Shown here piece after piece: positions 1,849 through 43,652 of a stretch of DNA of 64,000 nucleotides. Source of the stretch: Mytilus edulis (lineage: Eukaryota); contig NC_092353.1 of NCBI RefSeq assembly GCF_963676685.1, positions 48,980,001 through 49,044,000 on the forward strand, read 5' to 3'. The notes beneath the pieces were generated by a model that saw only the letters and a program-made list of their open reading frames with translations, searched no databases and was not told the origin of the DNA. Position 1 is the first letter of the stretch; every line of letters begins with the position of its first letter. The position numbers and the translations under genes are program-made.

Positions 1849-2188
1849 ATGGACAAGATGTCGAAAGCAGAACCAAAAATATATTTGAACAACATCTTTG
1901 TTAACGGGCCAACAGATGATGATGTGTACGAAGAATGTTTCGATACAGAAAATCAATATGATTATGAGGAAGTTTCCGTTATCGCCATAACAAATCAACT
2001 TGATGTCGATATTCCAGACAATATGCCAAAGAATCAGTCAATAAAAAAAGATAACAGTCAGAGCAAAAAGAAGCACCCGCATTTGCGGCATATGTTTTTT
2101 ATTTGTGGCTTCGTGATCATGTTAGTAGCATCAAACGGCCTGACATTCATTATCACAAAAGATATATTGTCTGAAGACAAATCAAATA
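1849..2188 (+). CDS. Gene 1 first coding exon: cytoplasmic tail plus signal-anchor TM
   Basis: MDKMSKAEPKIYLNNIF...VYEECF...YDYEEV...KKKHPHLRH followed by hydrophobic MFFICGFVIMLVASNGLTFIIT. Acceptor ttttAG at 1767-1768; donor GTGAGT at 2189. Confidence 0.8.
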
Positions 2189-5100
2189 GTGAGTATGATT
2201 AAGTATGTACTAGTATGCTGTCATCCCTGTTTTCAGAACTGAGTTTTGTGTCAATGATATCAACTGTACTATATAGCTGAACTGTTCGTAAAAATTGTGA
2301 AGGTGGTTCAAAATGTTAGCTGCAGTAGTAGTAAAATTGAGAATGGAAATGGGGAATGTGCCTAAGAGACAACAACCCGACCATAGAAAAAAAACAACAG
2401 CAGAAGGTCACCAACAGGTCTTCAATGTAGCGAGAAATTCCCGCACCCGGAGGCGTCCTTCAGTTGGCCCCTAAACAAATATATACTAGTTCAGTGATAA
2501 TGAACGTCATACTAATTTCCAAATTGTACACAAAAAACTTAAATTAAAATAATACAAGACTAACAAAGGCAAGAGGCTCCTGACTTGGGACAGGCGCAAA
2601 AATGCGGCGGGGTTAAACATGTTTGTGAGATCTCAACCCTCCCCCTATACCTCTAGCCAATGTAGAAAAGTAAAAGTACTTGTTTTAGTTCCCATTTATT
2701 TATTTTGGAAAAAGTTAGTTCCAATAACATTGATCGGCGGTGATTATATCACATACAGATTGTATGTTATAAATTTGAGAAATATATATTTTGATGAACA
2801 CTGCGCTGATTTGATTTAAAACTTGAACAGTTTGAAATTCTTTGTATGTACTAAAATTCTTGCTATCACCTTGCATTTTATAGTTCTAAAAATTAATCTC
2901 TATTAAAAATTAAATAATTCATATAACCTCTAATTGATTTAATATTTTTATGCACGATAAATAACATCACGGGTACCAAGATTCTTTATTGTTACAAAAC
3001 ACGCTAGCACTCGGTTTGCGTGTTCCATCTAACTCCTTTTCTTACCTTCTAAGTTTGATATTTTCATTATTCATTTTTCCATGTCAGGAACATGTGTTTA
3101 TTCTAAATAATCTTTACATCTTTACTTTATTATCAATGTATACCCCTACATTAGGATCATGTAATAATGTCTCTGTATTGTAGCGATAAATTAACAAAAA
3201 TTCACACTATTTCTTCTAAAATTAAAATGCAGGCAATGACGATTTTATTAACACATATTATAGATTGAACTTTAAAAAATAAATTACCAAATCGTCACCA
3301 AAAAAATATCAGACGAATATAATTTTGAGGTAAATTTTAGTTTGCCTTTGTTTCAGGGAAAATAATGACCTCACACAGGTCAATATTTTATGCCTTAGAG
3401 CATATTTCTATTAAACATGTTATCGCCTGAATTGATTCTTCGAAAAAATAACTTATCGTTCTGAAAAGAAAAAAAACCCCAGATAGGTATATTATGTTCA
3501 GAATAACTATTATGTTAATTAATTTGTGTTGCTCAAATATTAGTGACACCTTGTACTGGATGTGGGGTGTTAAATGGCACATTCCACTGTTTATGCGAAT
3601 GCGGCTTTTCTGGAAGTCTCTGTGAAGGTAAGCATCAAACATCATTAAAGTCATATGAATCGATGACTGGTAAAAATTGATGTTAATGCAATTCTTGAAT
3701 TGATTCATGTATATATATTAAACTTCTGTGCACGATTTTATCTTTTTATACGTATCTATTTTGTATAATCGTAAACAAGTATTCACTTGTTCAGTGTTGT
3801 GAAAATATATCAGCTCAAAAATGGTCGTGTTTAAAGCCGATGTATACCGATTGTCACATTTGTAGACAATCAACAAAGAAGCATGTATATTCAGATAAGC
3901 ACGTATACATGTACAATAAAATATAGTTTAGTTCAGTGACGGGGCGATGTTTACGTTTATTGACTCTCTCTGCAAATTTTGTTTTCCCCTTTGCACTTGC
4001 GTAACTGCGATCCCGGGATAATTATGAGAATGGTCAGACCTAGGTAACTGAATACGAAAGACATGTAGGCGAATTGTTGTCTGGAAGCCAAAAAAGTGAA
4101 AAAGGAAATGTCTTATAAGTTTGAACTAATGGAAGACTTTAAAAAAAAGTGTTGTACACGAGTCATGGTTAGTTTTACAATTAAAAAACTAGACATTTGG
4201 TTATAAAAAAAACCATATACATATTTTTTTTCAATTTGAAGTTTCATTTTGATTTAACGTTAGTATAGTATATTGCTACATTAGTGTAAAATAATAGAGA
4301 AAAAACAAACAAGCTTATAGAAAACCGGAATCAGCTGAAACAAAACATTTTGCGTTCTAAATTAAACATAAATTAGTTGTTTTTGATAATGTGTAAAAAC
4401 TTAAAGAAAACCTTCAAGGGGTTGCGATGGTGTTCGTATTTTCTTCGTTATTGAACAATACCTTAAACATAACGTTCATTAACCTACGCTAAAACTATTC
4501 TGTTTCTCCCTAATATCGTCATAAGTTCGTGCTACTAAACATGAATTCTTGTAATCTTCAGGTTTAATATTTTTTAAATGAAATATTATCTGTATCACAT
4601 CATTCAACCTAACTTCGATTTTTAAAGGGGTAGCGACTGTGTTGTCATTGATGTTATATATCTTGCGTCACTACGCTCCTTGGGGTATAAATGTCATCAA
4701 ACTTTGTCCACCTATGACATAATCTGCGATAGACAACAAACTATGTAACGGCCTTATATGATATCAGCATATTGACCATTACTTTCAAAACAATTAAACC
4801 AAACTTCAATTTCAAAATGTAAGCTGATATCATAATATCAAATTTTTAAGTCTTTGTTTTTCCAGTTTAATGAAATAAATATTTAATCGAATCTGTTTTT
4901 AATTTTTCCATTAATACTAGTATGAAAAACATTTTGAATTTCAGTGACACCTTGTACTGGACGTAAATGTTTCAACGGAGGCTCATGTGAGGTGTTGGAT
5001 GAAATGTTTCACTGCTCATGCAAACCTGGGTTTTCTGGACATCTGTGTGAAGGTAATTCTTAGATATCATTAAGGAAGATAAAATGTAGTGTTCATTTAA

Positions 5101-8100
5101 AAGAATCTTGAGAAAGAGTAGTTACTATACATTCATTAATGTTATACATATCGCGACGATAGGCTCCTCGGATACAAAGGTCACACACATTGTCTCCATG
5201 GCAGAATCTCCGAAAGACAACTAACAATGTAACGGCCTGATATCATATCAGCATATTTACCAATACTTTCTAGACTGGCTTGTTTTAAAATGTAAACTGA
5301 TGTCAGGATATATTTTTTTTTATTCTACGTTTTTTTTTTAAATTTAATGAAATACTAGAAAGGATCAATAACAATCTGTTTTTGATTTTTATTTAAATCT
5401 ATGACAAACATTTTGAATTGAAGTGACACCTTGTACTGGAATAAACTGTTTGAACGGAGGCTCATGTGAGGTGTTGAATGAAATATTTCACTGTTCATGC
5501 GAATCAGGTTTTTCTGGACGTCTCTGTGAAGATAAACCTTTTTGTGTTTATTCTTAGTTTAAAGGAATATTAATGAAATACAAAGAAACAAGAGAATACC
5601 GCAAAAACAACCCGTGCTTTTATTGAAACGAACCGTTGAATAGAAAATAAACTGAATTAGGTTTTTAGCATGTTTTCGCAGCGATACCATTCTTGAGCAA
5701 TATCCAATTGAAAGCTACACAATAGGATTTCATCAAGTTTACGTTTCATCCTTAAATAATACACACGTAAGTAAAGTCAAATTTTGAATGATTCGCCTGA
5801 CCTAATGCGACTTCCTGTAATCTAGTGTTTTGATTAATCTATTTGACTTGCAATACTTATAGAATCCAACGACGAATCTTCGATGTTTGAAAATGCAGCT
5901 ACTCATAAAATTTTAATTGATGTTATATCTCACGTTGGTGCGCTCATCGGGATGAAAAGAGTGAAATCACAAATATATCGAACTCCGAAAAAAGTTCAAA
6001 ACGGAAAGTCAAACCCATCAATCGAATAAATAACAAATGTCATAATCCTGTAGTGTAAACAAATGTAACAAAACTTTATACCTACACGTGAAGGAATATT
6101 TGATAGATAACGAAATATGTGACGACATGAATTTGTATCCGTACACTAAGCACTACTTTCAAGACAATTGAACCAAACGTTTCATATTAAAAATGTATAC
6201 TGAATCATGATATCAAATTGTATATTCTATGTTATTTTCAAATTAATGAAATACTTTAAATGTTATAAATCCACCTAATGAAATCTGTTTTTCCTTTTTT
6301 CTATAATTATGACGAACACTTGAAATTTCAGTCACACCTTGTACTGGATTTAAGTGCTTGAATAGAGGCTCGTGTGAGGTGTTGAATGGCACATTTCACT
6401 GTGCATGTGATTCTGGGTTTTCCGGACGCCGGTGTGAAAACGGTAAGGCTTTCGTAGCAATAAAACGTGTAAAGGTTTCAGAAGCGATATCTCAGACAAG
6501 CTTGTTAAAACGTGCCAATACGGTTTTTAAAAGAAGTTCTGAACTTGCTTATGTCTATACTAACATCCGTCAGTCCTTATAAGCTCTCCCATGGGTACAA
6601 TTCTTTCCAGAATAGCTTTACCGGCTAGGACGCATCCCGGGTACCAAGATTCCTTATTGTTACACAAAACACGGTAGCACTCGGTTTGCGTGTTCCATCT
6701 AACTCTTTTTCTTACCTTCTAATAGATATAGGAAGATGTGGTGTGAGTGCCAATGAGACAACTCTCCATACAAATAACAATTTAAAAAGTAAACCATTAT
6801 AGGTTAAAGTACGGTCTTCAACACGGAGCCTTAGCTCACACCGAACAACAAGCTATAAAGGGCCCCAAAATTACTAGTGTAAAACCATTCAAACGGGAAA
6901 ACCAACGGTCTAATCTATATAAACAAAACGAGAAACGAGAAACACGTATATATTACATAAACAAACGACAACTAATGTACATCAGATTCCTGACTTAGGA
7001 CAGGTGCAAACATTTGCAGCGGGATTAAACGTTTTAATGGATCCAAACCTTCTCCCTTTTTCTGAAACAATAGCATAACATCACAACAAAGAAAAACATA
7101 CGATAAAATATCAATTGGCAGACTTAACTCAATAAAAAAACGTATGATTAAACAATGAACGAATAAATTTGATCTGCGATATCTGAATACAAATGCACAG
7201 TTAATTAAATATTAGAGACAAACATTCATGACCAAAAAGCTAACAAACAAATTCAAAAACAGGACATGACTGAGAAATATTTAACCAATCAATGTTCACT
7301 TTAGAAAAAACCGGTTTTTTTATAATCTTGAAGTTTATACAAATGTTGTAAGAATAAGTGAAAAATTGAAGATATTACAAATAATCAAAGCTGGTGTACA
7401 GAAAAGATCCGTATAAATAAAAAATAACAAAAAAGCATTATAAACAGTATCAACAGGTCGAATTAACAAGAAAATACGATTTGAGAGTACTCGCAGTTAC
7501 TGACAGCTAGTTAAAAGCCAAAACCAATTAATAATAAAAAATCATGCATCAGAGACTAAAATCGACTAAATGATAATTTCAGTGACAGCTTGTACTGGAC
7601 TTAAGTGTTTGAACGGAGGCTCATGTGGGGTGTTAAATGGCACATTTCACTGTTTATGCGAATCCGGCTTTTCTGGAAGTCTCTGTGAAGGTAAGCATCA
7701 AACATTATTAAAGTCATATGACACGATGACAGGTAAAAATTGATGAATTGATGCAAGTATATATTATAAACCTCTGTGCACGATTTTATCTTTTTATACG
7801 TATCTATTTTGTATAATCGTAAACAAGTATTCACTTGTTCAGTGTTGTGAAAATATGTTAGCTCAAAAATAGTCGTGTTTAAAGCCGAAGTTTACCGATT
7901 GTCACCTTTGTAAACAATCAACAAAGAAGCATGTATATTCAGATAAGCACGTATACATGTACAATAAAATATAGGTTATTTCGGTGACGGAGCGATGTTT
8001 ACGTTTATTGACTCTGTCTGCCAATTTTGTTTTCCGCCTTGCACTTGCGTAACTGCGATCCCCGGAAAATTATGAGAATGGTCAGACCTAGGTAACTGAA

Positions 8101-11100
8101 TACGAAAAACATGTAGGCGAATTGTTATCTGGAAGCCAACAAGTAAAAAAGGAAATGTCTTATAAGTTTGAACTAATGTAAGACTTTTAAAAAAAATCGT
8201 TTGTTCACGAGTCATGGTTTGTTTTACAATAACATATGCATATTTTTTTCAATTTAAAGTTTCATTTTGATTTAACGTTAGTATAGTATATTGCTACATT
8301 AGTGTGAAATAATAGAGAAAAAACAAACAAGCTTATAGAAAACCGGAATCAGCTGAAACAAAACATTTTGCGTTCTAAATTAAACATAAATTAGTTGTTT
8401 TTGATAATGTGTAAAAACTTAAAGAAAACCTTCAAGGGGATGCAATGGTGTTTGTATTTTCTTCGTTATTGAACAAAAACTTAAATATAACGAACATTAA
8501 CCTACGCTAAAACAATACTGTTTCTCCCTAATATCGTCATAAGTTCGTGCTACTAAACATGAATTCTTGGTATCTTCAGGTTTAATATTTTTTTAAATGA
8601 AATATTATCTGTATCACATCATTCAACCTAACTTCGATTTTTGAAGGGGTAGCGGCTGTGTTGTCATTGATGTTATATATCTTGCGTCACTACGCTCCTT
8701 GGGGTATAAATGCCATCAAACTTTGTCCACCTATGACATAATCTGCGATAGACAACAAACTATGTAACGGCCTTATATGATATCAGCATATTGACCATTA
8801 CTTTCAAAACAATTAAACCAAACTTCAATTTCAAAATGTAAGCTGATGTCATAACATCAAATTTTTAAGTCTTTTTTTTCCAGTTTAAGGAAATAAATAT
8901 TTAATCGAATCTGTTTTTAATTTTTCCATTAATATGAAAAACATTTTGAATTTCAGTGACACCTTGTACTGGACGTAATTGTTTGAACGGAGGCTCATGT
9001 GAGGTGTTGGATGAAATGTTTCACTGCTCATGCAAACCTGGGTTTTCTGGACATCTGTGTGAAGGTAATTCTTAGATATCATTAAGGAAGATAAAATATA
9101 GTGTTCATTTAAAAGAATCTTGAGAAAGAGTAGTTACTATACATTCATTAATGTTATACATATCGCGACGATGGGCTCCTCGGATACAAAGGTCACACAC
9201 ATTGTCTCCATGGCAGAATCTCCGAAAGACAACGAACAATGTAACGGCCTGATATCATATCAGCATATTTACCAATACTTTCTAGACTGGCTTGTTTTAA
9301 AATGTAAACTGATGTCAGGATATATTTTTTTTTTATTCTACGTCTTTTTTTTTAAAATTTAATGAAATACTAGAAAGGATCAATAACAATTTGTTTTTGA
9401 TTTTTATTTAAATCTATGACAATCATTTTGAATTGAAGTGACACCTTGTACTGGAATTAACTGTTTGAACGGAGGCTCATGTGAGGTGTTGAATGAAATA
9501 TTTCACTGTTCATGCAAACCTGGGTTTTCTGGACATCTGTGTGAAGGTACAATTTTTTGTTTTTATTCTTAGTTTAAAGGAATATTAATGAAATACAAAG
9601 AAACAAGAGAATACCACAAAAACAACCCGTACTTTTATTGAAACGAACCGTTTTGGTAGAAAATAAACTGAATTAGGTTTTTAGCATGTTTTCGCAGCGA
9701 TACCATTCTTGAGCAATATCCAATTGAAAGCTACACAATAGGATTTCATCAAGTTTACGTTTTATCCTTAAATAATACACACGTAAGTAAAGTCAAATTT
9801 TGAATGATTCGCCTGACCTAATGCGACTTCCTGTAATCTAGTGTTTTGATTAATCTATTTGACTTGCAATACTTATAGAATCCAACGACGAATCTTCGAT
9901 GTTTGAAAATGCAGCTACTCATAAAATTTTAACTGATGTTATATTTCACGTTGGTGCGCTCATCGGGATGAGTGAAATAACAAATATACCGAACTCCTAA
10001 AAAAATTCAAAACGGAAAGTCAAACCCATCAATCGAATAAATAACAACTGTCATAATCCTGTAGTGTAAACAAATGTAACAAAACTTTATACCTACACGT
10101 CATGTAATATTCGAAAGATAACGAAATATGTGACGACATGAATTTGTATCCGTACACTAAACACTACTTTCAAGACAATTGAACCAAACGTTTCATATTA
10201 AAAATGTATACTGAATCATGATATCAAATTGTATATTCTATGTTATTTTCAAATTTAATGAAATACTTGAAATGTTATAAATCCACCTAATGAAATCTGT
10301 TTTTCCTTTTTTCTATAATTATGACGAACACTTGAAATTTCAGTCACACCTTGTACTGGATTTAACTGCTTGAACAGAGGCTCGTGTGAGGTGTTGAATG
10401 GCACATTTCACTGTGCCTGTGATTCTGGGTTTTCCGGACTCCGGTGTGAAAACGGTATGGCTTTCGTAGCGATAAAATGTGTAAAGGTTTCAGAACCGAT
10501 ATCTCAGACAAGCTTGTTAAAATGTGCCAATACGGTTTTTTAAAAGAAGTTCTGAACTTACTTATGTCTATACTGCCATCCGTCAGTTCTTGTAAGCTCT
10601 CTTATGGGTACAATTCTTTCCAGAATTATTATCATGAACATACCAAATGTTAAGTTCTGCAATTTGTCGAAGGATTCCAAAAATCATTGCCGATTAACTA
10701 TTTTTAAGCTGTTATTCCTTTCAGAAATTTAGATTATTTGGAAAAATCTTTGTTAGAGCTTTCAATAGATATATGAAGATATGGTACGAGTGCCAATGAG
10801 ACAACTATCCATCCAAGTCTCAATTTGTAAAAGTAAACCATTTTAGATTAAAGTACTGTCTTAATTTACCACGAAGCATTGGCTCGCACGAAACAGCAAG
10901 CTATGAAAGGCCACTACTAATGGTAAACCATTCAAACGGGAAAACAAACGGTATAATCTAAATAAAAACGAGAAACGAGAAATTCTTCTGAAACACATCA
11001 ACAAACTACATAACATAGAACACTGGCAGGTGCAAACAAATGCATCGCGTTTAAACGTTTTATTACATGTAGGTACCAACCCCCACCCTTATCTGAAACA

Positions 11101-13831
11101 ATAGTGTAACATCGAAAGACACACTATTAACTATCAAAGGAAATGGCTCAACTCTATCAAAAGAAATTTTGCAAGCCTACATATATGGTAAGAAGTTCAA
11201 CTATATCGATTATTTGTCAATAGTGTAAAGCAATAATTCGTCTAAAAATATGGATTCAGCGCTGATTTACAAATTTTTACATGAAATATGTCTCTTAGAA
11301 ATATTTATTCAAATATCAGTTGTAGTGAACTATTTAGTTTTAAGGAATCATTTTGCATTGAAATTGAAAGACTCTAACTTCTGATAATTCTAATGAAATT
11401 TTTATTTCACAAATGACTAAAGATATTTTCACAATACTTTTTTTATAGACTTGATACACAGAATTAGCCAGATAAACGAACGTGTACTTACATGATCGAC
11501 TCTCTAGAAAGTAGAGACCCGAGACCACTCAATGTTTTGGGTGGTGTTGCTAAGTATTCTTTTCTAGGTTACGTCTTAAAGACTTATTTGTCCTTTGCTT
11601 GTTTTTTGTTTTTTTGCAATGGCATTGTAAGTTCCATTTTTAATTTCTGAGTTAGGTATATTCCGCTATGTCTTATACATATAATAAAGTTGTAAATAAA
11701 CTAATCTAGAGAGTTCTTTACGTTGAAAGGATGATATAATGTATGTACGTCGGTTTTTATAAATTTAAACGCAGTTCTTTAATCGTTTAGAAAATTACAA
11801 CTTGACATTACATACAAACGAAAAGTATGTAGCTGATAATATAAAAGATTAATTGCAGAAGTTGGACCATGCTTTTCAAATCCCTGTTTGAATTTTGGTT
11901 CATGTAGAGCATCTTGTAATACTTATACCGTTACTGTCTAAATGGAACCAAAGGAAGTCGTTGTCAAGGTGAGTAGAACACACAAAAAAAAAAAATACAA
12001 AAAAAGGATAAAAGTAGAAATGTATACAAAACCAAACAAAAACCGATTAATGAATAAGAAGACAATATCAATATGATCTCGCGTGGTATTAACACCATAA
12101 ATATGCAGAGCTTGATAATCAAATAAATATGTATAACATATGACCTTATGATGAACCGTCATTCATTTATGGTATTGCAGCTGCGAAGCCCTTTTTTCAG
12201 GAAAAAACCCCATAAAAATACTGATTGCAAATGAAAATAACACTTCTAAAGACTAGAGAATATGTATTCCCCATATAGTATATGTCAACGTTGTGTCTTT
12301 TAACACCTTATATTCTTTACATACAGATTTATTACATGAAATAATAACATCCCCTGGATATCCGTCGAACTACAACGACAACACGTATAAACTATGGCAT
12401 ATTGATGTTGGACTTTCAAATATTATCCGAATAACGTTTACTCAGTTTGAACTTGAAGACGAATATGATTTAGTAAAAGTAAGTTAGTTGCTCTATAATA
12501 TTTCTTTCCACCATATAACGAAAGTAATATCATTCTTAAAATGTATATCCTTATAACACATTTCAACACAGTATTCAAATAAAGGAAACAATGAATACAA
12601 TGTTTGTCGGCAAAACCATCCCAATATTTAAAATACTATGCATGAAACTTAGTTGAATTAAAAAAAAAGGGGGGTAATCGTTACCATCAAAGCTTTAAAA
12701 GTACTAAAAAATGTACAACCTTTACCTTATCCGTCAAACGATTTTTTATGCATCATATTTTATATATAAGATATAAGGTAGGTTTGGTCATCGACAAGAT
12801 CGTAACAGACGGAGGATTTTAAATCTATCCTGCTTTTTGAAATACGATAAAACAAGAATATGTGTGGGAAAATAAAAAAAAACCAATCACTGAACATTTC
12901 TCACATATCTAAAATCAATCGTAAAAAAATAATAAAAAAGGAAACTAATAAACTTGAAACAAATAGTTGACATCAAACACCTCCCTTTCCTTGTAAAAAA
13001 TACGTTAAAAAATACCCGGAAAAGTACAATACAAATTATATAATAAAGATAATAGGATGTATCCTAAGTATTCACTGACATCTTCGTCTGTGGGAGAAAT
13101 GTTTCATCTCATATATAGGTATACAGAATTAACTTTATCAAGTCAACGCTATAACTTTTAATACACACATCTTAACTTTCCAATTGGAGATATATATCCA
13201 TTGTTTTCTTTTCCATGTATCCGATATTTGTATTTTATTGTTTTTTTCTAATGTTAGATGACGTTGATTTTCTTTTTTCGGTCGTTGATTGTATATCATT
13301 AAAGTTTAATGATATAATTTAACGATGTTCCATTTGTATTATATAAAAACTGTAGGATTACAGAACAAACAGAAATGAGATAAAAAAAAAAAAAAAAAAG
13401 GCAACAGAAGTATACCGCTGTTCAAAATGCATAAATCGATTAGGAGAAAACAAACCCGGGTTATATACTAAAACAGACCACTGAAGTGCAACAAAAAACA
13501 AACAACAATGCAACGTACATATAAATGAGTTATAAGATAACAACTACTATGTTCCTGACTTGGTACAGGACATTTTAATAAAAAAAGGTGGGTTGATCCT
13601 GATTTTGTGGCTAGCTAAACCTCTTTGCTTTATGGCTATGTTTAATTTACTGCCAAAATGACAACATCACATAACGGGAGTACAGCACAAAAAATGCAAG
13701 AACACGAAAGACAGCGATATACACTAATAAATAAAATAATAGTATATTTCGACATGTTAACAACATAATGACAACGAATAACTAAAATGAATTTAAGGAC
13801 AGTATGCAAAACCAGTGTAATAGAATTACGA

Positions 13832-13879
<48 letters not shown>

Positions 13880-14927: not shown

Positions 14928-14951
14928 TTATATATATATATATATATATAT
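14928..14951. repeat. (TA)n microsatellite
   Basis: About 11 TA units downstream of the gene 1 stop. Confidence 0.9.
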
Positions 14952-17163: not shown

Positions 17164-18426
17164 AAGGACAAAAGACAAGGTTTGAAAAGAGGCGTTTTTG
17201 GCCCCTTGCCAAATAAGTTTATATATACATCATTGATAGCCTTAGTTAGAAACTATTCAAAACTATGATTTTTTATGTTTCGGTGAAAGGAAGGTTGCCT
17301 AGCAACGGTTATATTAAATAGCCAAATTATCACTTATGCATTGTTTTCTCATTACACATTAGCATATCAAAATAGTATTGTTTGTTTAACAATAACTTGA
17401 GGTTACAAATGAGGAGTCACTTCAATTTCAGTTTAAAAAATGGTAAGCAACAACCTAGCAACAAAAAAATTGCCTACAACGGTTAAAAAAATTGTAATTT
17501 CTACCGTAGTAAAAAAAATCCAATAAAAACGTTGAATGTAAAAGATATGAACCTCTAAAGTCTTATATTATAGGACTCATGTTTTTCAAACAAATAATGT
17601 TGATCAATTATGTTATGGTAATTTTAATAAACATTTATTGATTACATAATATCGAGTTGTTCCAACGATACACTTGTCGGTGTGTTCGATCATACGAATT
17701 TACCGACATTCATACAGACAAAATTACCCAACTTTGAAAAATTCTTGTGACGAAACTGCATTTCGGAACACGTTAAAAATTAGATACTCAAAAAGTTACA
17801 TTGTTAATGTTTGATATATATATTTAAAAAAAAACAAATATGCAGTCAAATCCGGCAGTTTTTTTAAACACCCCTATGTTGAACAACAGATTGTTCAATT
17901 AACATAAAATTGAGAATGGAAATGGGGAATGTGCCAAAGAGACAACAACCCGACCATAGAAAAAAAACAACAGCAGAAGGTCACCAACAGGTCTTCAATG
18001 TAGCGAGAAATTCCCGCACCCGGAGGCGTCCTTCAACTGGCCCCTAAACAAATATATACTAGTTCAATGATAATGAACGCCATACTAATTTCCAAATTGT
18101 ACACAAGAAACTAAAATTAAAATAATACAAGACTAACAAAGGCCAGAGGCTCCTGACTTGGGACAGGCGCAAAAATGCGGCGGGTTTAAACATGTTTGTG
18201 AGATCTCAACCCCACCCCTATACCTCTAGCCAATGTAGAAAAGTAAACGCATAACAATACGCACATTCAAATTCAGTTCAAGAGAAGTCCGAGTCTGATG
18301 TCAGAAGATGTAACCAAAGAAAATAAACAAAATGACAATAATACATAAATAACAACAGACTACTAGCAGTTAACTGACATGCCAGCTCCAGACTTCAAAT
18401 AACTGACTGAAAGATTATGATTTCAT

Positions 18427-18489: not shown

Positions 18490-18542
18490 TGAGAAGAACA
18501 TAACCCGTGTCATGCCAACAACTGGTTTTTGAATAAATGTGT

Positions 18543-30100: not shown

Positions 30101-33100
30101 TGAGAGTTTATTGCCTAGGCAGAGCATATTAAGTTTTTGTTTAGTTTCCATAAATATCAACATTACGCACGTGTTTAAATTTGAATTTTTATTTCTGTGA
30201 CACTATTGAGTAATCATGTCCTTTTGTGTTAGTCTCCGCCTATTTTGTTCAGTCTATTTGAATCTCGCAAATAACTATGAGACTCTAATAAATTTTAGGA
30301 CTAAAAAAACTCTTATCGGAAAACAAAGGGTGATTATTTACGTTTACATTTTAATTTTAAAGCAAGATTTTTTAAATGTTAAAAAAAAAGTAATGTAGCA
30401 TTCAAGAGGCAATAACTACGAGATATATACAAATTCTAAAGTATGATTTTTTGTTTGTTCAATCATTAATAAAAGTGATATAATGAAATAATAATTCGCT
30501 TTTAGAAGCCATGGTTCAATTTTGTCAAATTAAGCCAATAAACAAGGATGATGAATTATTTACTTGAAAGTGAATAATCCGACCTCATATATATGCATTG
30601 AATCCGTATTCGTGTTAACTTCAATTTTACCCTTTAGCTAAAGATGGATAACGCATTCATATCACCGTGCATGTTCGGTTATTTAAAGGAAAGGAATGTC
30701 AACATTAAATCGAAAGTGAAACAAAGGGTTTGACTGACTGATTCGATCCACAAAAATCATACGTATACAGGTAAAAACGATGATTAACACATACTTTATC
30801 TGTGGAATTGATCAGACATAGAAAAATCCAATTGCACGAGTTTTGCATTCTATTTATATCTATATTAATGTTTATATCGCTTATGTGATCATCGGCAGTG
30901 TCCAGATGTCAACTCGAAGTCGGTCTCAAGATTAAAATACACACATAACGAAGCTACACATTATCGAGTCCATGGCATGTAAATTGTGTGTTTCAGACTT
31001 TCGTAATTTGAATAAATGTATTACATGGTTAAGGATTTAATATGAGAATATGAGTCAAATCGGAGAATACGAATTTGACAGCTAGTACCTCCTTTAAACC
31101 AACTAAATTTTTGGGGGGACAACATCAGATGTTAAAAACAACAAGAGTTACCTGGTCTTTTGATCTTCACAGACTTTGCAATGAAATTACATCACTTATA
31201 TTCCCCGGATTTTGTGTTTTAGGGAGGTCCCTAACTGCAATTTTGGTATATTATACAAAAATAGGCTGTTCATAACCTATTTTTTAAACTGATTTGCAAA
31301 TCATATTTGTGTACTTTTCTTACGTTTTCAGCCATTACTCATAACTGCAAAACTACTCAAGCAAAGTGATCAAAAATAACAAGTATAATTACTTGTCATC
31401 AAGTTTTTGCGGTACAACTGCCTTAAAATAATATTACAGTGACTTGACTGATAGTGTTGCTATCCACCAATTGCAATTCATTCAAAATTTTGACCAAATT
31501 GCAATTTGTTTTATTAAACCAAATTGTTCAACTGGTCAGAAATTTGAACAAATTGTTCAGTCAAAATGTGAAAGTGCAAGGTGATAAAATAAATCATACT
31601 TACAATCCTATAAGACTTCAACTCCACTGTGTTGATGTTATTTTTAAATTAGTTTATCAATCTGTATAGTTATATATAGCTATTACCATATTTTGCAATT
31701 CAAAAGAATAGTATTTTAGGTTATTTCCCCAAGGAAACTTATCAATAGCATATTGTTATTTCACACATAGTTTACTGAATATATGATGTATTATTTTAAA
31801 TGATATATGATTCTTATAAATATAAAATCCTTTTCGCCATTACCATACTAAAGGTCAACTATTTTATTTTGAATTGCTATAAAAATGTCCCAACTAAGCT
31901 TTTATATAGTTTTTCTTTCGAAAGAAAAACTATATAAAAGCTTAGTTTGGACATTTTTATAGCAATTACAAATAAAACAGTTCACCTTTAGTATGGTAAT
32001 AGCTATATATAACTATACAGATTGATAAACTAATTTAAAAATAACATCAACACAGTGGAGTTAAAGTCTTATAGGATTGTAAGTATGATTTATTTTATCA
32101 CCTTGCACTTTCACATTTTGACTGAACAATTTGTTCAAATTTCTGACCAGTTGAACAATTTGGTTTAATAAAACAAATTGCAATTTGGTCAAAATTTTGA
32201 ATGAATTGCAATTGGTGGATAGCAACACTATCAGTCAAGTCACTGTAAATAAAATTTAGAACGGGAATGGGGAAATTGTCAAACCGACAACAACCAAACC
32301 AAAGAGCACAAAACCACAGAAGGACACCGACGGGTCTTCACAGCGAGAAAATTCCGCACCCGGAGGCGGGCCTCAGCTTTTCCCTAACAAAACATGTGTA
32401 CTAGCTATATAGGTCAGTAGAAATGGGCGTCACACTTAACTCCAAAACATATAAATAAACTAAAATTCAAAAACATATGAGACTATAAAGGCCAGACATG
32501 TTTTGTAAGATCTCAACCCTTCGCTATATATCTAGTCAATGTAGAATAAACAAAACACACCAATACGCTCAGTAAAACTCAGTTTAAAAGAAGTCCGAGT
32601 CCGATGTCAGAATAGGTACCCAAAGCAACTAAGATAATTGACAATAATACATAAATTAACAAAGGACTATCAGCAGTTACTGACATGCCATCTTTAGTCA
32701 TCAATCTATCTAATTGACAGATTATGTCTTTATCATATGAAAATTAAACATAATCCCTTCTGTAAGGGATTTAGTACTATCATTAAGTATATAAGAAGAA
32801 CATAACCCGTTGCATGCCAACAACTGGTTTTAGAATAAATGTGTTCACTTTTTGCCAAAATACCAACAATCATTTAGATATCCTATTTGTAATGACCTGG
32901 CAATGGTATATACTTTACTAGTATACAATTGAGAAAGGAAATGGGGAATGTGTCAAAGCGATCACAACCTGACCATAGAGCAAACAACAGCCGAAAGCCA
33001 CCAATGGGTCTTCAATGTAGCGAGAAACTCCCGCACCCGTAGACGTCCTTCAGCTGGCCCCTTAAAAAATATGTATACTAGTACAGTGATAATGGACGTC

Positions 33101-36100
33101 ATACTTAACTCCGAATTATACACAAGAAACTTAAATTAAAAATCATGCAAGACTGACAAAGGCCAGAGGCTCCTGACTTGAGACAGGTGCAAAATTGCGG
33201 CGGGGTTAAACATGTTTATGAGATCTCAACCCCCCCCCTATACCTCTAGCCACGTAAACGCATAACAATACGCACATTAAAATTCAGTTCAAGAAGTCAG
33301 AAGATGTAACAAAAGAAAATAAATAAAATGACAGTAATACATAAATAACATAAGACTACCAGCAGTTAACTGACATGCCAGCTCTGTATCGCTTCTGAAA
33401 AGTTATTTTACTTGTTGGTTAGCTTTTGACGTGAATGACGACTTTTTCAGCTTTTTATTGAATATTTTCAAAAAAGATTGGATGTGAAATACCTGAACGT
33501 TCATATATAATTATAAGATGTCTGCATGTTGATAGATATTTACAAATGATGTCCTTGTACTGATGATAAAATAGTAAATGTTTTAACCTGTTTCTGATAT
33601 CGAGACCCCTACTCTACAATATTTACTATTTTTCTTAATGAAAAGTCAAATTCTATAGGAATTCAGTAAGTAAGTTATATATACCCATACCGATAAAGAT
33701 AACATTACTGAAAAAAATATAAATTGCAATAGAATTTACGTACTCTTATGGAAATTTAATCGAGAAAAAACATCCCCAAATAAATTAAAGGTCCAGGGCC
33801 GTGGTAAGACTTTCTTCAAACATTAATTCTATAATTCGTAGAAACTCTTATAAATAGCAATAGTAATATTCTACCAAGTTTAGAAGACCTAACTAAAACA
33901 TAGTTATGTTTTCTTTCAAAGATTAAGTAGCTTTATAGTGTAATGTCCCTACAGAAAATGTAGTAGTCCGGTCAATCAGTTTTAACATATAGCTCTGTGA
34001 TATCCTCTATAGAAAGCTGTTTTACACGATATAGAGCTAAGATAAGACCAGATCAAAATATTAAACCTTTGATAAAACTTCATTCGAAAACGTTCGCAAT
34101 AAGTTTTGTTAATTTTGCAAGGCATTATAAAAAAAACCGAGCATTCTGGAAATATAGATATTTGACTTAAAGAAACATTTATTTTGAGGTGTGATACATG
34201 TACCACCAAAATATATTACGTCACATCCGGTTGCTACGTAAAAGGTGAAACAAATTTCCCTTGAAATTGACAGTTATAGGTAACTAATCCTACAATCATT
34301 GCAGTAAAACATTTGTTGGTCATAAACATATATCGTTTGTATTTCAAAGCACCATATATGCATTTTTATGTTTGGCGTTTCTAGAGAATATTTTGGAAAC
34401 TTGAGGTGACATGGTTACTAAAGCTTGAACAATGGTTAAAAAAGAGGGTTTAATGAAATGTTATCTGAATTGTTTTCTATAGACGGGTTTATCCAAGTCT
34501 TATCTCAAAAACATGTGCGCTGACATTAAGAGTTCACGTGGTGCGTCGGTCATAGCACTCGTGAATGATAACGCACATGCAATCAATAACCTATATAGTC
34601 TATATAATTATCGTTCATTTATAACGTTTTTGTTCCACATATTTCATGTTTATATGACCATGACAAGTAACGAAAAATATAGGAAAGGGGGTGGAAATTC
34701 TTGTGCTGTTAATGGATGTTCTAATAATCGTCGTAAATTAAATGATTGGAACGTATCATTTTGTGAATTACACGGACAAAATCACGAAGACTGTTCTTGT
34801 TTGGTTCCATTTAAACTACATGTTATGCCCGCTAATGAGACAAAACGATTTCAGTGGATTAAAGCTTTAAATAGAAAAACACTTCCAAAGCAAGTATTCG
34901 TATGCTCGAATCACTTTCTAGACGGAGCTCCGACGGAACAAAATCGTTTCCCGAAATTAAATCTTGGTATGAATGCCAGACAACCCCCGGTAGACGTAAA
35001 CTGTCGAGGCAAGAACCAGAGAGTAGAAAAAGAAAACGTTTACTGGAAGAAAGCAGTAGTACCGAGACGTGTATTAACATTAGTCCGACTGAAGGGGGAC
35101 CGTCTAGTTCTCAACTGCTTCCAGAATCTTTTTGTGATTTTAATGTGGTTAATCCACTACGGCATCAATTGGAGCACAATATGTTGATTCTGGTTATATG
35201 ATTTCACAGGATCACATGTATTCAAAACCCTGGTCGGACACACAAAATACCTTTATTCAAACGAATACGGCGTTGGCTGAAGAAAAGGGGGTTCAAGTTA
35301 AAATTGAAAGTAGCGCTATGTCCGCAGAAATAAGTATAGTAACGGACAGTGACTCTTTGTTGTATACTGATGTAAGTAAAGAAGTGTTCTTTACATTAGC
35401 AGAGGTTATGTCAGAAGTAAATACATTTAAATTTCAACTTGAAATCGCCGACCAGTTACTACTTGTGTTGATGAAACTTAAGCTAAACTTGGTGTTTGAT
35501 GACTTAGCTCGTAGATTTGGAATTTCTAAAAGTTTAGCTAGTAAAATGTTTAATGCTTGGATGCCAGTCCTTGCAGAAAAACTTAAGGATTTAGTTGCAT
35601 GGTTGCCGAGAGAAACAATTCGAGCATGTTGTCCCGAATCTTTCCGAGAAAATTACCCTCGCACCACTGTAATAATAGACTGTGCCGAAACATTTATACA
35701 ACGACCTACGAACTTGAAAACTAGGTGTGAAACTTTCAGTAATTGCAAGTCGCACAATACCGCACAATATTAATGTAGACTATCTCCACATGATCAAATC
35801 ATGTTTATTTCCAAAGCTTTTTGCGGCAGAGCTAGTGACAAGTTTATCGTTGAAAAGAGTGGATTTTCAAACTATTTATTGCCGGGAGACGAAGTAATGG
35901 CAGATCGTGGATTTACAATTAAAGATTTTCTTTTTCCTCGTCGTGTAAAATTAAATATTCCTGCATTTACAAAATGCAAACCCCAGCTTTCAAATGAAGA
36001 TGTCACAACTACTAGACGTATGCACATGTACGAATACATGTAGAGTGTGCTATTCGTACACTGAAAGTATTTAAAGTGTAAAGTGGAACTGTACCAGTTT

Positions 36101-39100
36101 CGTCTTTAAAGAATTTTGATGACATTCTTATTGTTTGTTCCGCATTGGTAAATTTGAGATCAGATTTATTACGGGATGTCAGTGTAGATACGGATTGAAT
36201 GTAATTACACTTTTAAATTGTATTTTTTGTCCTCCATTTTTTTATTACATTTTTATTCAACCTTCAGATAGTTTTATTTTGATTAATTTATTTCCATCAT
36301 AATGGTTGTTATGAACAATGTGAAAGATAGTTGTATACTAAATTATATATATTTATTGGTAATAATAAATCTGTTCATTACTTTTTATTATTAAATTCAA
36401 TTGTATCGAAATATAAGCATCTGGACTAATCAAAGTAGGAATTACCGGTCTCCTAAAGTGAACTCCTGGGATAATACATGATTATTACATAACAAGCAAT
36501 TACGTTAACATGTGAAGGTAAACATCTTGTCAAGTCAACACTGTTTGCCTTTCCAACTGTCATTATCCCTAGTAAATTACACAAATGTCTATGAAGTCTT
36601 CTTGTCCAAACATCAACATTGCATACCAATGTGTTATCTCATTAATATGAGTTAATTATCAAATTTCAGAATTGTTTTTCAGACCCAGTGTTTACTACAT
36701 GTAATTATATATAACCAAACATTTAATTCAAAATGCTATTTATCATGTTTATTAAGTGTGTGGTTTATCATGCACTTTTACTAAACATTCTAAACAATGA
36801 CCTAGATTTAGTGATAGTGTTTAACGTTCAGTGGTAGATATTACATGAATATTGCGATGAGAATATGATACATTCCTTGTACTATTAACCAGTTGAGCTA
36901 AGTAAATCAGTGGTTGTCATTGGTTCATGTCTGTCATATTTGGTTTTTGTAGATTATTTTGTGATAAATAAGGCTGTTAGTTTTCTCAACTGAATATAAT
37001 TGTTTCATAAATTTGTTCATGTTTGGGCCTTTCATTTACAATGTACATGTATTATGGGTCTTTCTCATTGTTTACAGAGAATATTTGTCTCAATTGTCAA
37101 TCATACTACATCTCCTTATTTTATTATTATTACAAGGACATTGTAAACAATGTTTAAACTCTGAGTCAACTAGTCTTTACTTCTTAACCCAGATGTACAT
37201 TGTATATTCTGTAAAAAATACACACATGTATACTGTATATGTGCTTAGCAGAGATGTCTGGCCTGTTAGGGGTTTAAATCCTTAACCTCCTTGACCATAC
37301 ATTGATTTACAAGTACAAATGCTTACAGGGTCAATCTGATTTTTAAGATAAAATGAACAAATAAAAGCTTTAGACCATAAAATTATTGTTATTGAAAAAT
37401 CTATCTCATAAAATTACAGAACAGTCCACTGAAAGTGAGACGATCACTGTCTACTTCATCAACAATTCTTGGAATCATTTTTCTCACATAAAAGTCTTTT
37501 AATCTTTGGACTTGTTTACGAACATATTCCTGGTCATAATCAACATTTATTAAAATAAAGTCATTCTGACACCTCCACAGGTACAGTTTGCCTTTTCGAA
37601 GGCCAGTACAGTAAATAGTCAATTGAATCTACATGTAATAACCCCTACTTCCTTTGACTTTAATTTGATAATGTCCATCAGGAATTTAATTACATCATAT
37701 TTCCCACCATTTATCAGTTCTTCAAGTATATTCCATTTTGTTGGAACTGGACATTTAACCTCAAATAATGTGTCACCATTTAAAATTCCATCTGGACTAC
37801 TAGAAAGCAACTGTTCTTCAGTTGAGACATACATGCCGGTATCTATAATAGTATTTTCCAGTGACCTTAGGTGCTCTTTAGCCACAGGTTCTTGCTGCGT
37901 ACCATGTCTCGTATATTTGTTCCCTGTAAATTTGGGATGCAAATGTTCCCTAATAAATGATGTTGCATCAGTCGTGACTTTACTTGGCACTTTAGTTGCA
38001 CTGCTTGCAGTTATGCACAATTTCCTTGCATCTTTCCATAAAACACTGCTACTTTGACCTTTTGTTCCATGTTCCAAGTTTTTCCTTTTTGTGTCATGAA
38101 GTTCAATATATTTATTGAAAAAAGTATAACATTTCCTACATGAACTAATAGAAGTATGTTCACCGTGCTCCTCTTAGATTATCACGTTAGACATAGGTGT
38201 ACAATTAAAACTTTTGTAAAAAGTTGTTCCTTTTATTTCGAACAGTTTAGATATAGGTTAATTCTTTATAGCTGCCTTAAATTCTGCATCTGAGGAAAAT
38301 AGAGGAGTGTCACGAACACTTGGCACATAATCTTCATTATTGTCCATGACAGATTCGCCAACCTTGTGCTTCTTAAATGTTATATTGGAGAGTGCCTTTG
38401 GTTCAACATTCCTTGTGGTCCCTTTATTCATTTGAGCACTTTCATCAGTGCAGGCAATCCAAGTAAGACTATTTCTCACAGCATGTTCCCACTTCCAAAG
38501 AAGAGCCCCAACATGACTAAACGCATGACATCGGCAGCCATACTCGAACACCATCCATTTTTCACTGTGCCATCTTGTATAGAATGTACATATACACTGT
38601 TCATTCTCGATACTGTTTGAGAAGAACGAATTTGTGCCCTCATTAAAAACGTATTGTCAGTATAAACATGGTGTGTACACAATATAATAGCTCCGACATT
38701 TCCACTTTGAATGTAATTATAACTTTGCAGGCTTTTGAAATTTTTCATTTCTTGACCATCGACAGCTTTTGACGAAATTAAAAAGTTGTAAACATCATCC
38801 TACATAAAATTTGGCCATACCCTCATATCGTCGGCCCATGTTGTTATTTTATCCAAGCCTGGTTGATTCAGATTATTTATTTTAGTTGTATCAACAATAA
38901 AATCATGTGTGTTCAGATAGCGTGCTTTCTATAATGTTTACAATTTTTCACGACCTTAATGGCGACCGGATATCGATCACCTCGTGCGGAAAAGTGCAAT
39001 ACTAAGGGAGTCCATTAGAAAGACCCGTCTATAGTACTTGAACGGAAAAACGTAACTCATGCCAAATATTTCTTTATTTGAAACAAAGATGATTTCTGCA

Positions 39101-42100: not shown

Positions 42101-43652
42101 GGTTGGTTGGTTGGTTGGTTGGTTGGTTGAAATTCAAACACACATAAAACTGTTTAAATAGTGCCAAAACCACATAATTTGATGACCTTGACCTTTGACC
42201 TTGTGACCTTCGTCAAGGTCATTGCTCTACAAGGTCATTGCAAAAGACCCTATGGGTCAAGGACCTTTGTTTAAGAGTTTTGCCTAAATATGGCTTTTTA
42301 AAAACCATCGATGGGAGTTATGTCCCTTACATGATGGTAAAATCAATATAGTCATAATGTAAAAAAGTTGCCCCTTGAAGTACTTAACATTTTTCACTGC
42401 TTAAATTTTCTGTATCTATAACCATTCAAGAATTATAGGGAAATCAAAGACATATGAAAATCTAAAATATGACCTTGACCTTTGACCTTGACCTAATTTT
42501 CTAAGTTAGGAATCAGGGGACTCAAATAAAAACATTCCAAGGTTATACGGTTAACGGTTTATGAGTTAAAAAAACATACCGACAAATTTATTCCGTAAAG
42601 ATAGATAACTCCTATAAAATTTCATCGAATCGCTTCGATCCAAATTTGCCAAAATTTTCTGAGGATGTAACGAACAATTTGTAAAAAGAATTTTGTCGCT
42701 ATCTTTTTTTGTTACGAAGGAGATGCACACACATGATAAACAGTGAATAGGGAGATAACTCTTACAGAGAAAATTGTTCGTCTTAGCAGGGTGAAATTTA
42801 AAAGCGCATAAACTATACGATACAATATGAGAAATATCTAAGCGACATATTGCGAAACAAACATTTATCGCAAGAACAAAAGTTGGCGGAAAAAAAAAAA
42901 TAATAATAATAATAATCAGAACAAATACAATAAGTCTTTCCACAGAAAAGTGGAAAGACTTAATTAAATGCAGTAATATATTAAACATTGATTCAATTTC
43001 AGGTAATGGTGATTATTTAAGACTGCGCTTCAGTCGAACAGAATTGTACTATTCCTACTTCATGTCAGATGATGAAACGACCTTAAGTAATTTTAAAACA
43101 GTTGAAACCTCAAAGAGTGTATCAGCACGATTATCGACTTACAGGGGGACGATTTCTGACACATGTTTAGGTGAAGATGCTTTGATTTATTATGAAGTAA
43201 ACTATACATATTCCATACGCTCTAAACTTGCCTCTTTTAGTACAAAAGATATATTGGAAGTTGGCATTGCTGAACGTTCAAATGTTGATAAATATAGCGA
43301 TGCTGGTGCTTCAGCAAGTGGATGGTCATTCTACATGTTTTATAGAGGAGTATGGTTTTCTCGTGCTAGACGATTTGTATACATAAATGCAAGGCATAAC
43401 GGAAGTAGCAAAACAAGTCAAATACTGTTTACAACTTATGCAGGTGAACAGTTACACGGCCAATTAAAAATTTTCATTAATACCCGTAGAAATGAGTTTA
43501 CTGTTATGCATGATGATTTGAAAGTTTATGTTTTTGAAGATGTTAAATCAAACGAAACGCTTTGTCCGGTATTTGGAGTATACAATCCTGACCATGTTAA
43601 CGTTCAACTAAAGATATTAAATTCTTTTAATTTTTCTATGTATCCCTGGTGA
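26823..43652 (+). CDS. Type II membrane protein: Tyr-motif tail - TM - Cys-rich stalk - B30.2/SPRY-like domain (gene 2)
   Basis: Exons 26823-27171 (ends phase 1, GTAAGT), 28369-28491 (1-1) and 43003-43652 (phase 1 start, stop TGA) join in frame. The last join, across a TE-filled 14.5 kb intron, is inferred. Confidence 0.65.
28369..28491 (+). CDS. Gene 2 exon 2: Cys-rich stalk
   Basis: ttttacAG | [40 protein letters not shown] | GTATGT. 123 nt, open, phase 1-1. Confidence 0.7.
31437..32245. mobile_element. Foldback/palindromic MITE, Tc1/mariner-like ends, with a 148 bp insertion
   Basis: TA|CAGTG...CACTG|TA ends. The ~326 bp arms meet at TTC/GAA (31919/31920) with no spacer. Insertion 31691-31838 is flanked by an ATTACCATA duplication. 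Confidence 0.85.
32250..33610 (-). mobile_element. Two tandem decayed Naiad/PLE 3'-end copies
   Basis: ~32250-32850 and ~32927-33610 align to 17906-18850. The first has a degenerate SECIS (~32733-32790). The second lacks that segment but keeps RT C-terminal remnants. Confidence 0.75.
34654..36198 (+). pseudogene. THAP-domain DDE_Tnp_4 (Harbinger/IS5-like) transposase, disrupted
   Basis: THAP C2CH (CAVNGC...W...VCSNHF), HTH (LLLVLMKLK...DLARRFGIS), DDE motifs (IIDCAE, GRASD, MADRGF, RIHVE). Frameshifts at ~34967, ~35190 and ~36020; stops at 35771 and ~36079. Confidence 0.88.
37401..38930 (-). pseudogene. SWIM zinc finger + YqaJ/lambda-exonuclease-like protein, disrupted
   Basis: WADDMRVWP...KSLQSYNY; C..SHVGALLW; TKGQS...W...R..ITAS; HG..QE; SSPDG; FEVKCP; YYMQIQL. 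Several frameshifts and stops. Confidence 0.82.
40515..42130. repeat. Compound satellite array (~9 units of ~115-200 bp with (ATTG)n/(GTTG)n and GGTTAAACACGTT subrepeats)
   Basis: Core ggatcccgtatttaacacatgaaacggaaacatgc at ~40633, 40811, 40997, 41114, 41313, 41481, 41651, 41836, 42007. Confidence 0.92.
42170..42963 (+). mobile_element. Helentron/DINE-like non-autonomous element 3' part
   Basis: TGACCTTGACC motifs, an (AAT)n tract, then a 13 bp stem hairpin taagtctttccac-agaaaa-gtggaaagactta (42931-42962). Related decayed copy at ~55400-56137. Confidence 0.55.
43003..43652 (+). CDS. B30.2/SPRY-like beta-sandwich domain exon
   Basis: tttcAG acceptor. [23 protein letters not shown]...YRGTISD...YYEV...LEVGIA...GWSF...LKIFIN...LCPVFGV resembles the PRY/SPRY pattern (YxEV, xVGI, LxPxF). 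650 nt with no stop. Confidence 0.7.

Follow-up and report, generated by a model that had tools for sequence, protein, structure and literature searches.

A Mytilus family of predicted single-pass type II proteins with a shared tail/transmembrane exon and different ectodomains

Introduction

Dectin-1 (CLEC7A) and CLEC-2 are single-pass type II receptors with a short N-terminal tail, in which an acidic stretch precedes a conserved tyrosine, and with a modular extracellular recognition domain; their genes are clustered. Here we describe two neighbouring + strand genes, gene A and gene B, in a stretch of 64,000 nucleotides (nt) of Mytilus edulis (C10:48,980,001-49,044,000, hereafter the window). 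Their predicted products share all these features with Dectin-1 and CLEC-2, including the acidic stretch (DDDVYEEC in gene A). In contrast, there is no sequence homology, the ectodomains are of the EGF-CUB, CBM14 or TSP1-B30.2 kind instead of C-type lectin, the Mytilus motif ends in Cys or Phe instead of Leu or Ile, and two extra tyrosines (NxYxNN and Yxx[LVI]) are present. By analogy, the Mytilus genes resemble receptors with a hemITAM tail (half of an immunoreceptor tyrosine-based activation motif, ITAM) or endocytic type II receptors, and they are members of neither family.

Two other comparisons concern the ectodomains. The B30.2 domains of TRIMs, butyrophilins and pyrin are cytosolic. The last exon of gene B is predicted to adopt the fold of these domains and of stonustoxin but, unlike those of TRIMs, butyrophilins and pyrin, it lies behind a transmembrane (TM) helix and a TSP1-like, Cys-rich and sequon-rich stalk, and is predicted to face outward. 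Cubilin, C1r/C1s and the thrombospondins contain EGF, CUB or TSP1 modules shuffled in phase 1, and genes A and B are likewise built of modules bounded by phase-1 introns. They differ in that the shuffled unit includes a lineage-specific tail/TM exon, a common N-terminal chassis in one genus.

As far as we know, bivalves have no adaptive immunity and depend on receptor repertoires that expanded in a lineage-specific way, and very few bivalve membrane receptors have, to our knowledge, a known link to intracellular signalling. We report that A and B are members of a family of single-pass type II proteins so far named only in Mytilus, whose entries in public databases are all uncharacterized or misnamed. 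The best explanation, with a probability of about 0.6, is that these are Mytilus type II receptors in which a shared tail/TM exon carries shuffled ectodomains and signals through tyrosines. The structural part of this claim, a cassette with swapped ectodomains, is well supported and very probably correct.

A first exon shared by two neighbouring genes

The first coding exons of genes A and B each encode an entire cytoplasmic tail and TM helix:

1769-2188, + strand: gene A exon 1, defined by run contigs, with the 5′ untranslated region from 1769 and the ATG at 1858; cytoplasmic tail and TM helix
26797-27171, + strand: gene B exon 1, coding from the ATG at 26823; tail and TM helix, closed by a phase-1 GTAAGT donor

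A preliminary description of this DNA, made from the sequence, had proposed that these two exons align, that both follow an acceptor and end in phase 1, and that unrelated ectodomains lie behind them. All three points hold. The two products align with 41/117 identities (35% over 117 columns, E 8e-10; BLASTP, single comparison, composition-corrected), and the peptides quoted earlier were located on the + strand at 1858-1899 and 2143-2184 in gene A and at 26823-26864 and 27126-27164 in gene B. Phase-1 consensus donors close both exons, GTGAGT directly after 2188 in gene A and GTAAGT directly after 27171 in gene B, and the same phase-1 donor was found in nine more paralogous cassettes on C10. Acceptors lie upstream of both; the one in use in gene A, as judged from run contigs, falls between 1768 and 1769, and another acceptor is found nearer to the ATG. 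Behind this homologous exon, gene A encodes an EGF-CUB ectodomain and gene B a TSP1-like segment followed by B30.2.

The cassette family is defined here by three features of the first coding exon: the motifs M-x-x-A-x-x-N-x-Y-x-N-N, YEEC and Yxx[LVI], a TM helix that closes with TF..TK, and a donor in phase 1. Both genes belong to the family so defined: they match the family profile at 1e-41 (A) and 6e-45 (B), and each carries all three tyrosines and the phase-1 donor. Pfam gave no significant match for the two cassettes, DUF6520 being reached at 0.05, under its cut-off.

Distribution and architectures of the family

About 15 copies of the cassette are present in the 1.37-Gb genome assembly searched. 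On C10 they are located at 48.89, 48.92, 48.98 (gene A), 49.006 (gene B), 52.18-52.81 (seven and a broken one) and 57.10 Mb. More divergent cassettes occur on C7 and C12, where they adjoin TSP1 and B30.2 exons, and every genomic cassette examined has a phase-1 donor.

A cassette profile built from nine cassettes was used to search a library of 1.84 billion representative proteins (E <= 0.001). Only 20 proteins were retrieved. All the named ones are from M. edulis, M. galloprovincialis, M. coruscus or M. trossulus, and the remainder derive from unnamed Logan contigs. Cassette proteins do not carry a single type of ectodomain; instead, at least four architectures are found behind the cassette: EGF and CUB (P0008, P0009, P0032, P0034), EGF and the chitin-binding domain CBM14 (P0015, P0017, P0026), TSP1 or TSP1-like and B30.2 (P0021, P0063, the gene B type), and EGF followed by a domain without Pfam match (P0024). 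The C-terminal domain of P0024 had no Pfam match even at E <= 1 and is kept here as an unknown domain. A likeness to an IgGFc-binding-type domain was considered and set aside, since Pfam gave it no support.

In the open literature searched we found no description of this cassette family, as the preliminary description had suspected, nor of an extracellular B30.2/SPRY. Nothing relevant was met either on ITAMs of bivalves, hemITAMs of molluscs or type II transmembrane proteins with EGF; in the Mytilus pan-genome papers, "ITAM" denotes samples. All family members currently bear the label "uncharacterized" or a wrong name (cubilin-like, eyes shut-like, THBS2S). Because of this, recognising the shared cassette would improve Mytilus genome annotation. 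The family also lends itself to testing, being compact: a single conserved exon, three conserved tyrosines and four kinds of ectodomain, among them a B30.2 predicted to face outward.

Two members deserve separate mention. In P0011 (M. coruscus CAC5360531) the cassette is joined to a Pif1 helicase 2B domain, probably a mis-annotated gene-model fusion with a Helitron-like element. In the EGF-CUB paralogue at C10:48.92 Mb (L002 1177-1779), the acidic Y-x-E-C unit occurs four times in tandem (VVYMEC, VVYTEC twice, VVYMEC), so that the tyrosine motif has been multiplied within the tail of this gene.

Extent of ectodomain exchange

All module boundaries are in phase 1, with the exception of a phase-0 intron inside CUB, in agreement with the phase-1 exon shuffling put forward earlier. 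Since the tail/TM exon itself ends in phase 1, modules can be exchanged in frame behind it. Intermediates of recent shuffling are visible as a truncated TSP1, a duplicated EGF block and decaying exons.

How often exchange took place was examined with a maximum-likelihood tree of 46 cassettes (unrooted). Three strongly supported clades were obtained. Clade I consists of B30.2 genes of the gene B type, among which the EGF-CBM14 genes are nested; clade II, the TSP1-B30.2 genes and the EGF-unknown genes; and clade III, all EGF-CUB genes including gene A. The three main architectures need two changes on this tree and the P0024 type a third. The idea of mix-and-match receptors is therefore retained as regards exchangeable ectodomains, whereas free mixing is not supported, only two or three swaps being required. 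The most economical history would probably start from an ancestral gene of the gene B type (tail/TM, TSP1 and B30.2), the ectodomain of which would have been replaced by exon shuffling once by EGF-CUB, once by EGF and CBM14 and once by EGF and the unknown domain. Each form would then have been amplified by tandem duplication, mostly on C10.

The two genes had also been described as paired. The gene B cassette is 47% identical to those of the EGF-CBM14 cluster 3 Mb away, compared to 35% for gene A, and A and B are thus not a matched pair.

Other type II B30.2 genes form tandem clusters on C2 (24.66-24.95 Mb), C9 (61.27-61.31 and 82.74-82.90 Mb) and C11 (75.60-75.63 Mb). Genes of this kind, represented by P0058 and P0059, share with gene B the same single-exon B30.2 module and the type II layout, and some of their products carry a TSP1 repeat. 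In contrast to gene B, their tail/TM regions are unrelated to the cassette: no homology was detected between the tail/TM of P0058 or P0059 and the cassette (hhalign probability 0.3% and 2%). At least three different anchors are therefore combined with the B30.2 exon.

Gene B encodes a truncated TSP1 repeat and a divergent B30.2 domain

Behind its first exon, gene B has two further exons:

28369-28491, + strand: gene B exon 2, 123 nt, phase 1-1; Cys-rich, truncated TSP1 repeat
43003-43652, + strand: gene B exon 3, about 216 codons; complete B30.2 (PRY-SPRY) and stop

Gene B corresponds to the NCBI "uncharacterized protein [Mytilus edulis]" P0001 of 373 amino acids (aa), which is the exact sum of the three exons (100%). 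The three-part open reading frame (ORF) is conserved in M. trossulus (P0002, 90%) and M. coruscus (P0006, 74%), and P0001 aligns end to end with the TSP1-B30.2 protein P0063 (37%, E 3e-72).

Exon 2 was first described as a Cys stalk. It had no Pfam match and lacks the full TSP1 signature (WSxW and the six-Cys pattern of PF00090). Nevertheless, its remaining 43 residues are 40% identical (E 3e-12) to the Pfam-confirmed TSP1 of the paralogue P0021, the WSxW part being absent. As judged by this alignment, exon 2 appears to be a truncated TSP1 derivative.

The SPRY-like character proposed for exon 3 was confirmed by two routes, family profile and fold. Exon 3 alone gave no PRY (PF13765) or SPRY (PF00622) match in Pfam at E <= 0.1. 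The genome contains at least 37 single-exon B30.2 paralogues. Among 24 genomic paralogues of exon 3, PRY was recognised in 12 (best 7.8e-5) and SPRY in 6 (best 6.9e-6). The profile of the paralogue family matched the MID1 B30.2 at 9e-6 over nearly its full length, followed by TRIM21, MID2, BTN3A1 and stonustoxin. An AF2 (AlphaFold2) model of the domain, based on the alignment of the 24 genomic paralogues, reached a pLDDT (predicted local distance difference test) of 90.5 and a predicted TM-score (pTM) of 0.89. Its best Foldseek matches were the PRY-SPRY domains of TRIM25 and TRIM65, with TM-scores by target length of 0.65-0.72. The best 50 matches were mostly PRY-SPRY chains and also included stonustoxin, TRIM16L, TRIM67, pyrin and MID1 (E 2e-9 and up; TM-score by target length 0.6-0.75 for single-domain chains), and alginate lyases were interleaved from rank 25. 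With a weaker full-length model, VIA-align placed MID1 first (Z 13.4) and TRIM67 second (Z 13.1), and a protein atlas assigned exon 3 to SPRY clusters (score 0.94). The domain model agrees with the bent beta-sandwich expected of B30.2 (about 200 residues, PRY strands on the SPRY core). Profile and modelled fold thus indicate a divergent but genuine B30.2. A first full-length model of P0001 (pLDDT 49.6), for which Foldseek returned a mix of galectins, alginate lyases and B30.2, was discarded in favour of the domain model.

Gene A is partly decayed and probably transcribed

The ectodomain of gene A is spread over 11 exons:

3544-3627, + strand: EGF1, degenerate, 84 nt instead of 108, lacking 24 nt (8 residues including a Cys); skipped in run contigs
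4945-5052, + strand: EGF2, phase 1-1; joined to exon 1 in run contigs
5424-5531, + strand: EGF3, donor AT instead of GT; skipped by contig X1
6332-6442, + strand: EGF4, phase 1-1; Pfam EGF 2.8e-5
7583-7690, + strand: EGF5, second block copy
8957-9064, + strand: EGF6, second block copy
9439-9546, + strand: EGF7, second block copy
10344-10454, + strand: EGF8, second block copy
11859-11968, + strand: EGF9, of the GPCFSNPC type, 110 nt
12327-12478, + strand: first half of CUB; Pfam CUB 1.6e-7
14526-14705, + strand: second half of CUB, including the TAG stop; Pfam CUB 1.5e-3

Seven or eight EGF modules and a CUB had been expected. The CUB was found, divided between two exons, and the EGF exons number nine. 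Gene A was searched exon by exon, and public full-length proteins stood in for the joined spliced product. In gene A itself EGF scored 24.7 bits (cut-off 21.5) and the first half of CUB 32.0 (cut-off 21.4), the second half remaining slightly under the cut-off with 19.3 bits. In full-length relatives the values rose to 61.7 bits for EGF and 60.4 bits for CUB, identifying an EGF-CUB ectodomain. Phase-1 introns flank all nine EGF exons, and the intron within CUB is in phase 0. Orthologues with a tail/TM region, three or four EGF and a CUB are found in M. californianus (P0034, "cubilin-like", 68% identical to gene A exon 1), M. coruscus (P0029, P0030) and M. galloprovincialis (P0057). A whole M. 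galloprovincialis orthologue of 362 aa, P0031, falls in the same 90% cluster as P0057 and is encoded by a 1344-nt Logan contig, which, since it encodes the complete protein, can only be a spliced mRNA.

EGF1-4 and EGF5-8 are recent tandem copies of a 4.0-kb four-exon block, 92-99% identical (window 3480-11500). The second copy matches P0031 at 90-100%, and the first is decayed, EGF1 having lost 24 nt and EGF3 its GT donor. Compared to orthologues of three Mytilus species, EGF9 is one base short after 11929, and its inclusion leads to an in-frame TAA at 11939-11941. An assembly error, an allelic difference or a true lesion may explain this deficit.

Contigs from two runs of different studies, X1 and X3, whose RNA nature is guessed, cover 1769-2188 with two mismatches. 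Both join 2188 to 4945 across a GT..AG intron, and X1 also joins 5052 to 6332. These joints place an EGF exon in phase directly behind gene A exon 1 and bypass the damaged EGF1 and EGF3. RNA evidence for the joining of the first exons, called for by the preliminary description, was thus obtained for gene A exon 1 to EGF2, within the guess made about X1 and X3, whereas raw reads of two further runs (X21 and X24) brought none. As assembled, gene A shows partial decay. It appears to be transcribed, and spliced without its two damaged EGF exons, and EGF9 carries a one-base deletion.

Whether gene A is simply dying has therefore to be weighed. It may be a pseudogene copy, with the neighbourhood of A and B being without functional meaning, the end of a tandem EGF-CUB array beside a single B30.2 gene. 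We regard this as a serious possibility, if less probable than its opposite. In its favour are the 24-nt deletion in EGF1, the AT donor of EGF3 and the 110-nt EGF9 with its in-frame TAA, together with a cassette only 79% identical to the closest M. edulis or M. galloprovincialis products, the failure to find an intact M. edulis product, and the presence of two further EGF-CUB paralogues at 48.89 and 48.92 Mb. On the other side, exon 1 appears to be transcribed, its splicing is correct, and the omission of EGF1 and EGF3 preserves the frame. EGF9 could be bypassed in the same way: it is flanked by phase-1 introns and is absent from the annotated relatives P0039 and P0041, so that skipping would leave CUB in frame. 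Its one-base gap may also be an assembly error.

Predicted topology and conserved tail tyrosines

The type II topology claimed earlier was examined by hydropathy, charge and module type, which agree with it. The first 30 residues are hydrophilic (mean Kyte-Doolittle hydropathy, KD, -0.6 and -1.0) and a single hydrophobic 19-mer follows (KD 2.25 in gene A, 2.35 in gene B), with 4 or 3 K+R before the helix and 2 after it. The C-terminal modules (EGF, CUB, TSP1, CBM14) are all disulfide-rich extracellular types. Seven N-x-S/T sequons are found in the ectodomain compared to 3.2 expected, a weak enrichment (P 0.02-0.4). As judged by hydropathy and charge, the products of genes A and B are predicted to be single-pass type II proteins (N-in, C-out), with the whole tail and anchor encoded by one exon. 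The B30.2 of gene B would then face outward, the reverse of the situation in butyrophilins and TRIMs.

The tail of gene A carries Y9 (KIYLNN), Y24 (YEEC) and Y36 (YEEV), and that of gene B Y9 (NTYVNN), Y27 (YEEF) and Y39 (YDEL). Across the 46 cassettes, with denominators that vary by site, conservation is 37/43 for Y9, 38/43 for N11, 40/42 for Y24/27 and 40/46 for Y36/39. Other conserved points are M1 and the juxtamembrane TF..TK, and the rest of the tail is poorly conserved. The third tyrosine is followed by [DE][EQ][LVI] and lies 12 residues past the second (x8). In YEEC the Cys is present in 35/44 cassettes, gene B having YEEF. An acidic context before the second tyrosine is found in clade III. 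The tails do not conform to the hemITAM (an acidic triad and a single YxxL): gene A reads DDDVYEEC and gene B ENILEYEEF, with C or F at position +3. The pair formed by the second and third tyrosines appears, from its motifs, to be ITAM-like in spacing only.

A candidate receptor mechanism and its alternatives

The Grb2 SH2 domain prefers pYxN, pYEE- resembles the preference of Src-family SH2 domains, and YxxPhi can serve as an AP-2 sorting signal. On this background, the ectodomain of a cassette protein would bind an extracellular ligand (a glycan, chitin, matrix or a microbial surface), and clustering would let Src-type kinases phosphorylate the three conserved tail tyrosines. N-x-Y-x-N-N would act as a Grb2-type pYxN site, and Y-E-E-C with Y-x-x-[LVI] as an ITAM-like pair. 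The phosphotyrosines would then recruit SH2 adaptors. Taken by itself, such signalling through the tail tyrosines is plausible, with close to an even chance.

Several points weigh against the reading as Mytilus type II receptors with shuffled ectodomains and tyrosine signalling. Topology was judged from hydropathy and charge alone. The canonical ITAM, YxxL/I-x(6-8)-YxxL/I, is fitted in spacing and departed from in its first motif, which ends in C or F, and the B30.2 members P0018 and P0023 are without the second and third tyrosines. The restriction to Mytilus could stem from fast divergence of a short, low-complexity tail. TSP1 and B30.2 as the ancestral state is a parsimony argument on an unrooted tree. 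As for gene A, EGF9 is frameshifted, the protein search returned no intact M. edulis product of exactly this gene, and the RNA nature of X1 and X3, the source of its splice joints, is a guess. In the raw RNA-seq runs X21 and X24, which bear another organism label, reads fell on repeats only and none on gene A exons, which says little on expression.

The role of the proteins may also differ from immune sensing. They could be cell-surface anchors for shell, periostracum or byssus matrix. Cells of the mantle or foot would then be attached to a matrix of chitin and protein through the EGF, CUB, chitin-binding and TSP1 modules, and the tail would connect to the cytoskeleton or to adhesion signalling. 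CBM14 chitin-binding domains are present in one clade, a secreted EGF-CUB relative (P0040) is named "adhesive plaque matrix protein 2-like", and the shell-matrix proteomes of molluscs commonly include EGF, CUB and chitin-binding domains. B30.2, in contrast, is no known matrix module. We consider this role unlikely; it concerns biological function and is compatible with the same receptor mechanism.

A trafficking function of the tail seems less likely again. The proteins would then be endocytic or scavenger type II receptors, like the transferrin receptor (YTRF) or the asialoglycoprotein receptor, in which YxxPhi binds AP-2 for ligand uptake. The third conserved motif, Y-[DE]-[EQ]-[LVI], fits YxxPhi, those receptors are likewise type II proteins with the tail at the N-terminus, and NCBI names some EGF-CUB members "cubilin-like", cubilin being an endocytic receptor. 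However, neither the best conserved motif, NxYxNN, nor YEEC, which ends in Cys, is a YxxPhi signal, and three separately conserved tyrosines in acidic contexts resemble kinase/SH2 sites more.

Finally, that the likeness of the first exons comes from chance or composition (a low-complexity acidic tail and any TM helix) and the gene models from annotation artefacts can be dismissed: the tails are indeed acidic and of low complexity and pairwise identity is just 35%, but the E-value of 8e-10 withstands composition correction, profile matches reach 6e-44 and are confined to Mytilus proteins of the same layout, intron phase, TF..TK and the three conserved tyrosines are common to 46 sequences, the gene A splice junction from 2188 to 4945 is observed, and the ORFs are conserved between species.

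If the reading as type II receptors with tyrosine signalling is followed further, Mytilus might possess surface receptors of a class of its own, coupled to phosphotyrosine, in which a chassis specific to the genus (a Grb2-type YxN site and an ITAM-like pair) bears outward B30.2, chitin-binding or EGF-CUB sensors. This stronger proposal is speculative and, on present evidence, rather unlikely. If true, these receptors would parallel in function the hemITAM/ITAM C-type lectin receptors of vertebrates, and would provide the first B30.2 used as the extracellular recognition domain of a signalling receptor.

Other features of the window

The 14.5-kb second intron of gene B contains mobile-element sequence that is not part of the gene:

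34483-36040, + strand: remnant of a Harbinger/PIF-like transposase, in shifted frames

Pfam recognised THAP (2e-7), HTH_Tnp_4 (2.8e-18) and DDE_Tnp_4 (6e-15) in this remnant. In the same intron, an ORF on the - strand (37619-38077) encodes a YqaJ-like viral recombinase or alkaline exonuclease domain (Pfam 3.2e-9) and probably belongs to another mobile element.

Interspersed repeats sharing an ORF fragment are found at 2282-2700 and 6550-7130, with similar ORFs at 17883-18251 and 32253-33136. Read depth on the repeats at 2282-2700 and 6550-7130 was very high in all four runs examined, reaching thousands-fold in contigs, and raw RNA reads numbered in the hundreds and came from both strands; the repeats look like an abundant transcribed element of the SINE (short interspersed element) or transposable-element type.

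At 46968-47690 (+ strand), a 240-aa ORF consists of tandem repeats of about 20 aa (...FTHRKPKNVL.MLH.YHLLTENQKMFYICCTFIIYSPKTK...). It gave no significant Pfam match and is likely a minisatellite rather than a gene. Downstream of gene B and on the opposite strand lies a lectin gene, whose terminal C-type lectin domain (CTLD) exon at 56921-57217 (- strand; WIGGND...WNDDNC...FICE) is 39% identical to the CTLD of M. coruscus P0050 (E 9e-11).

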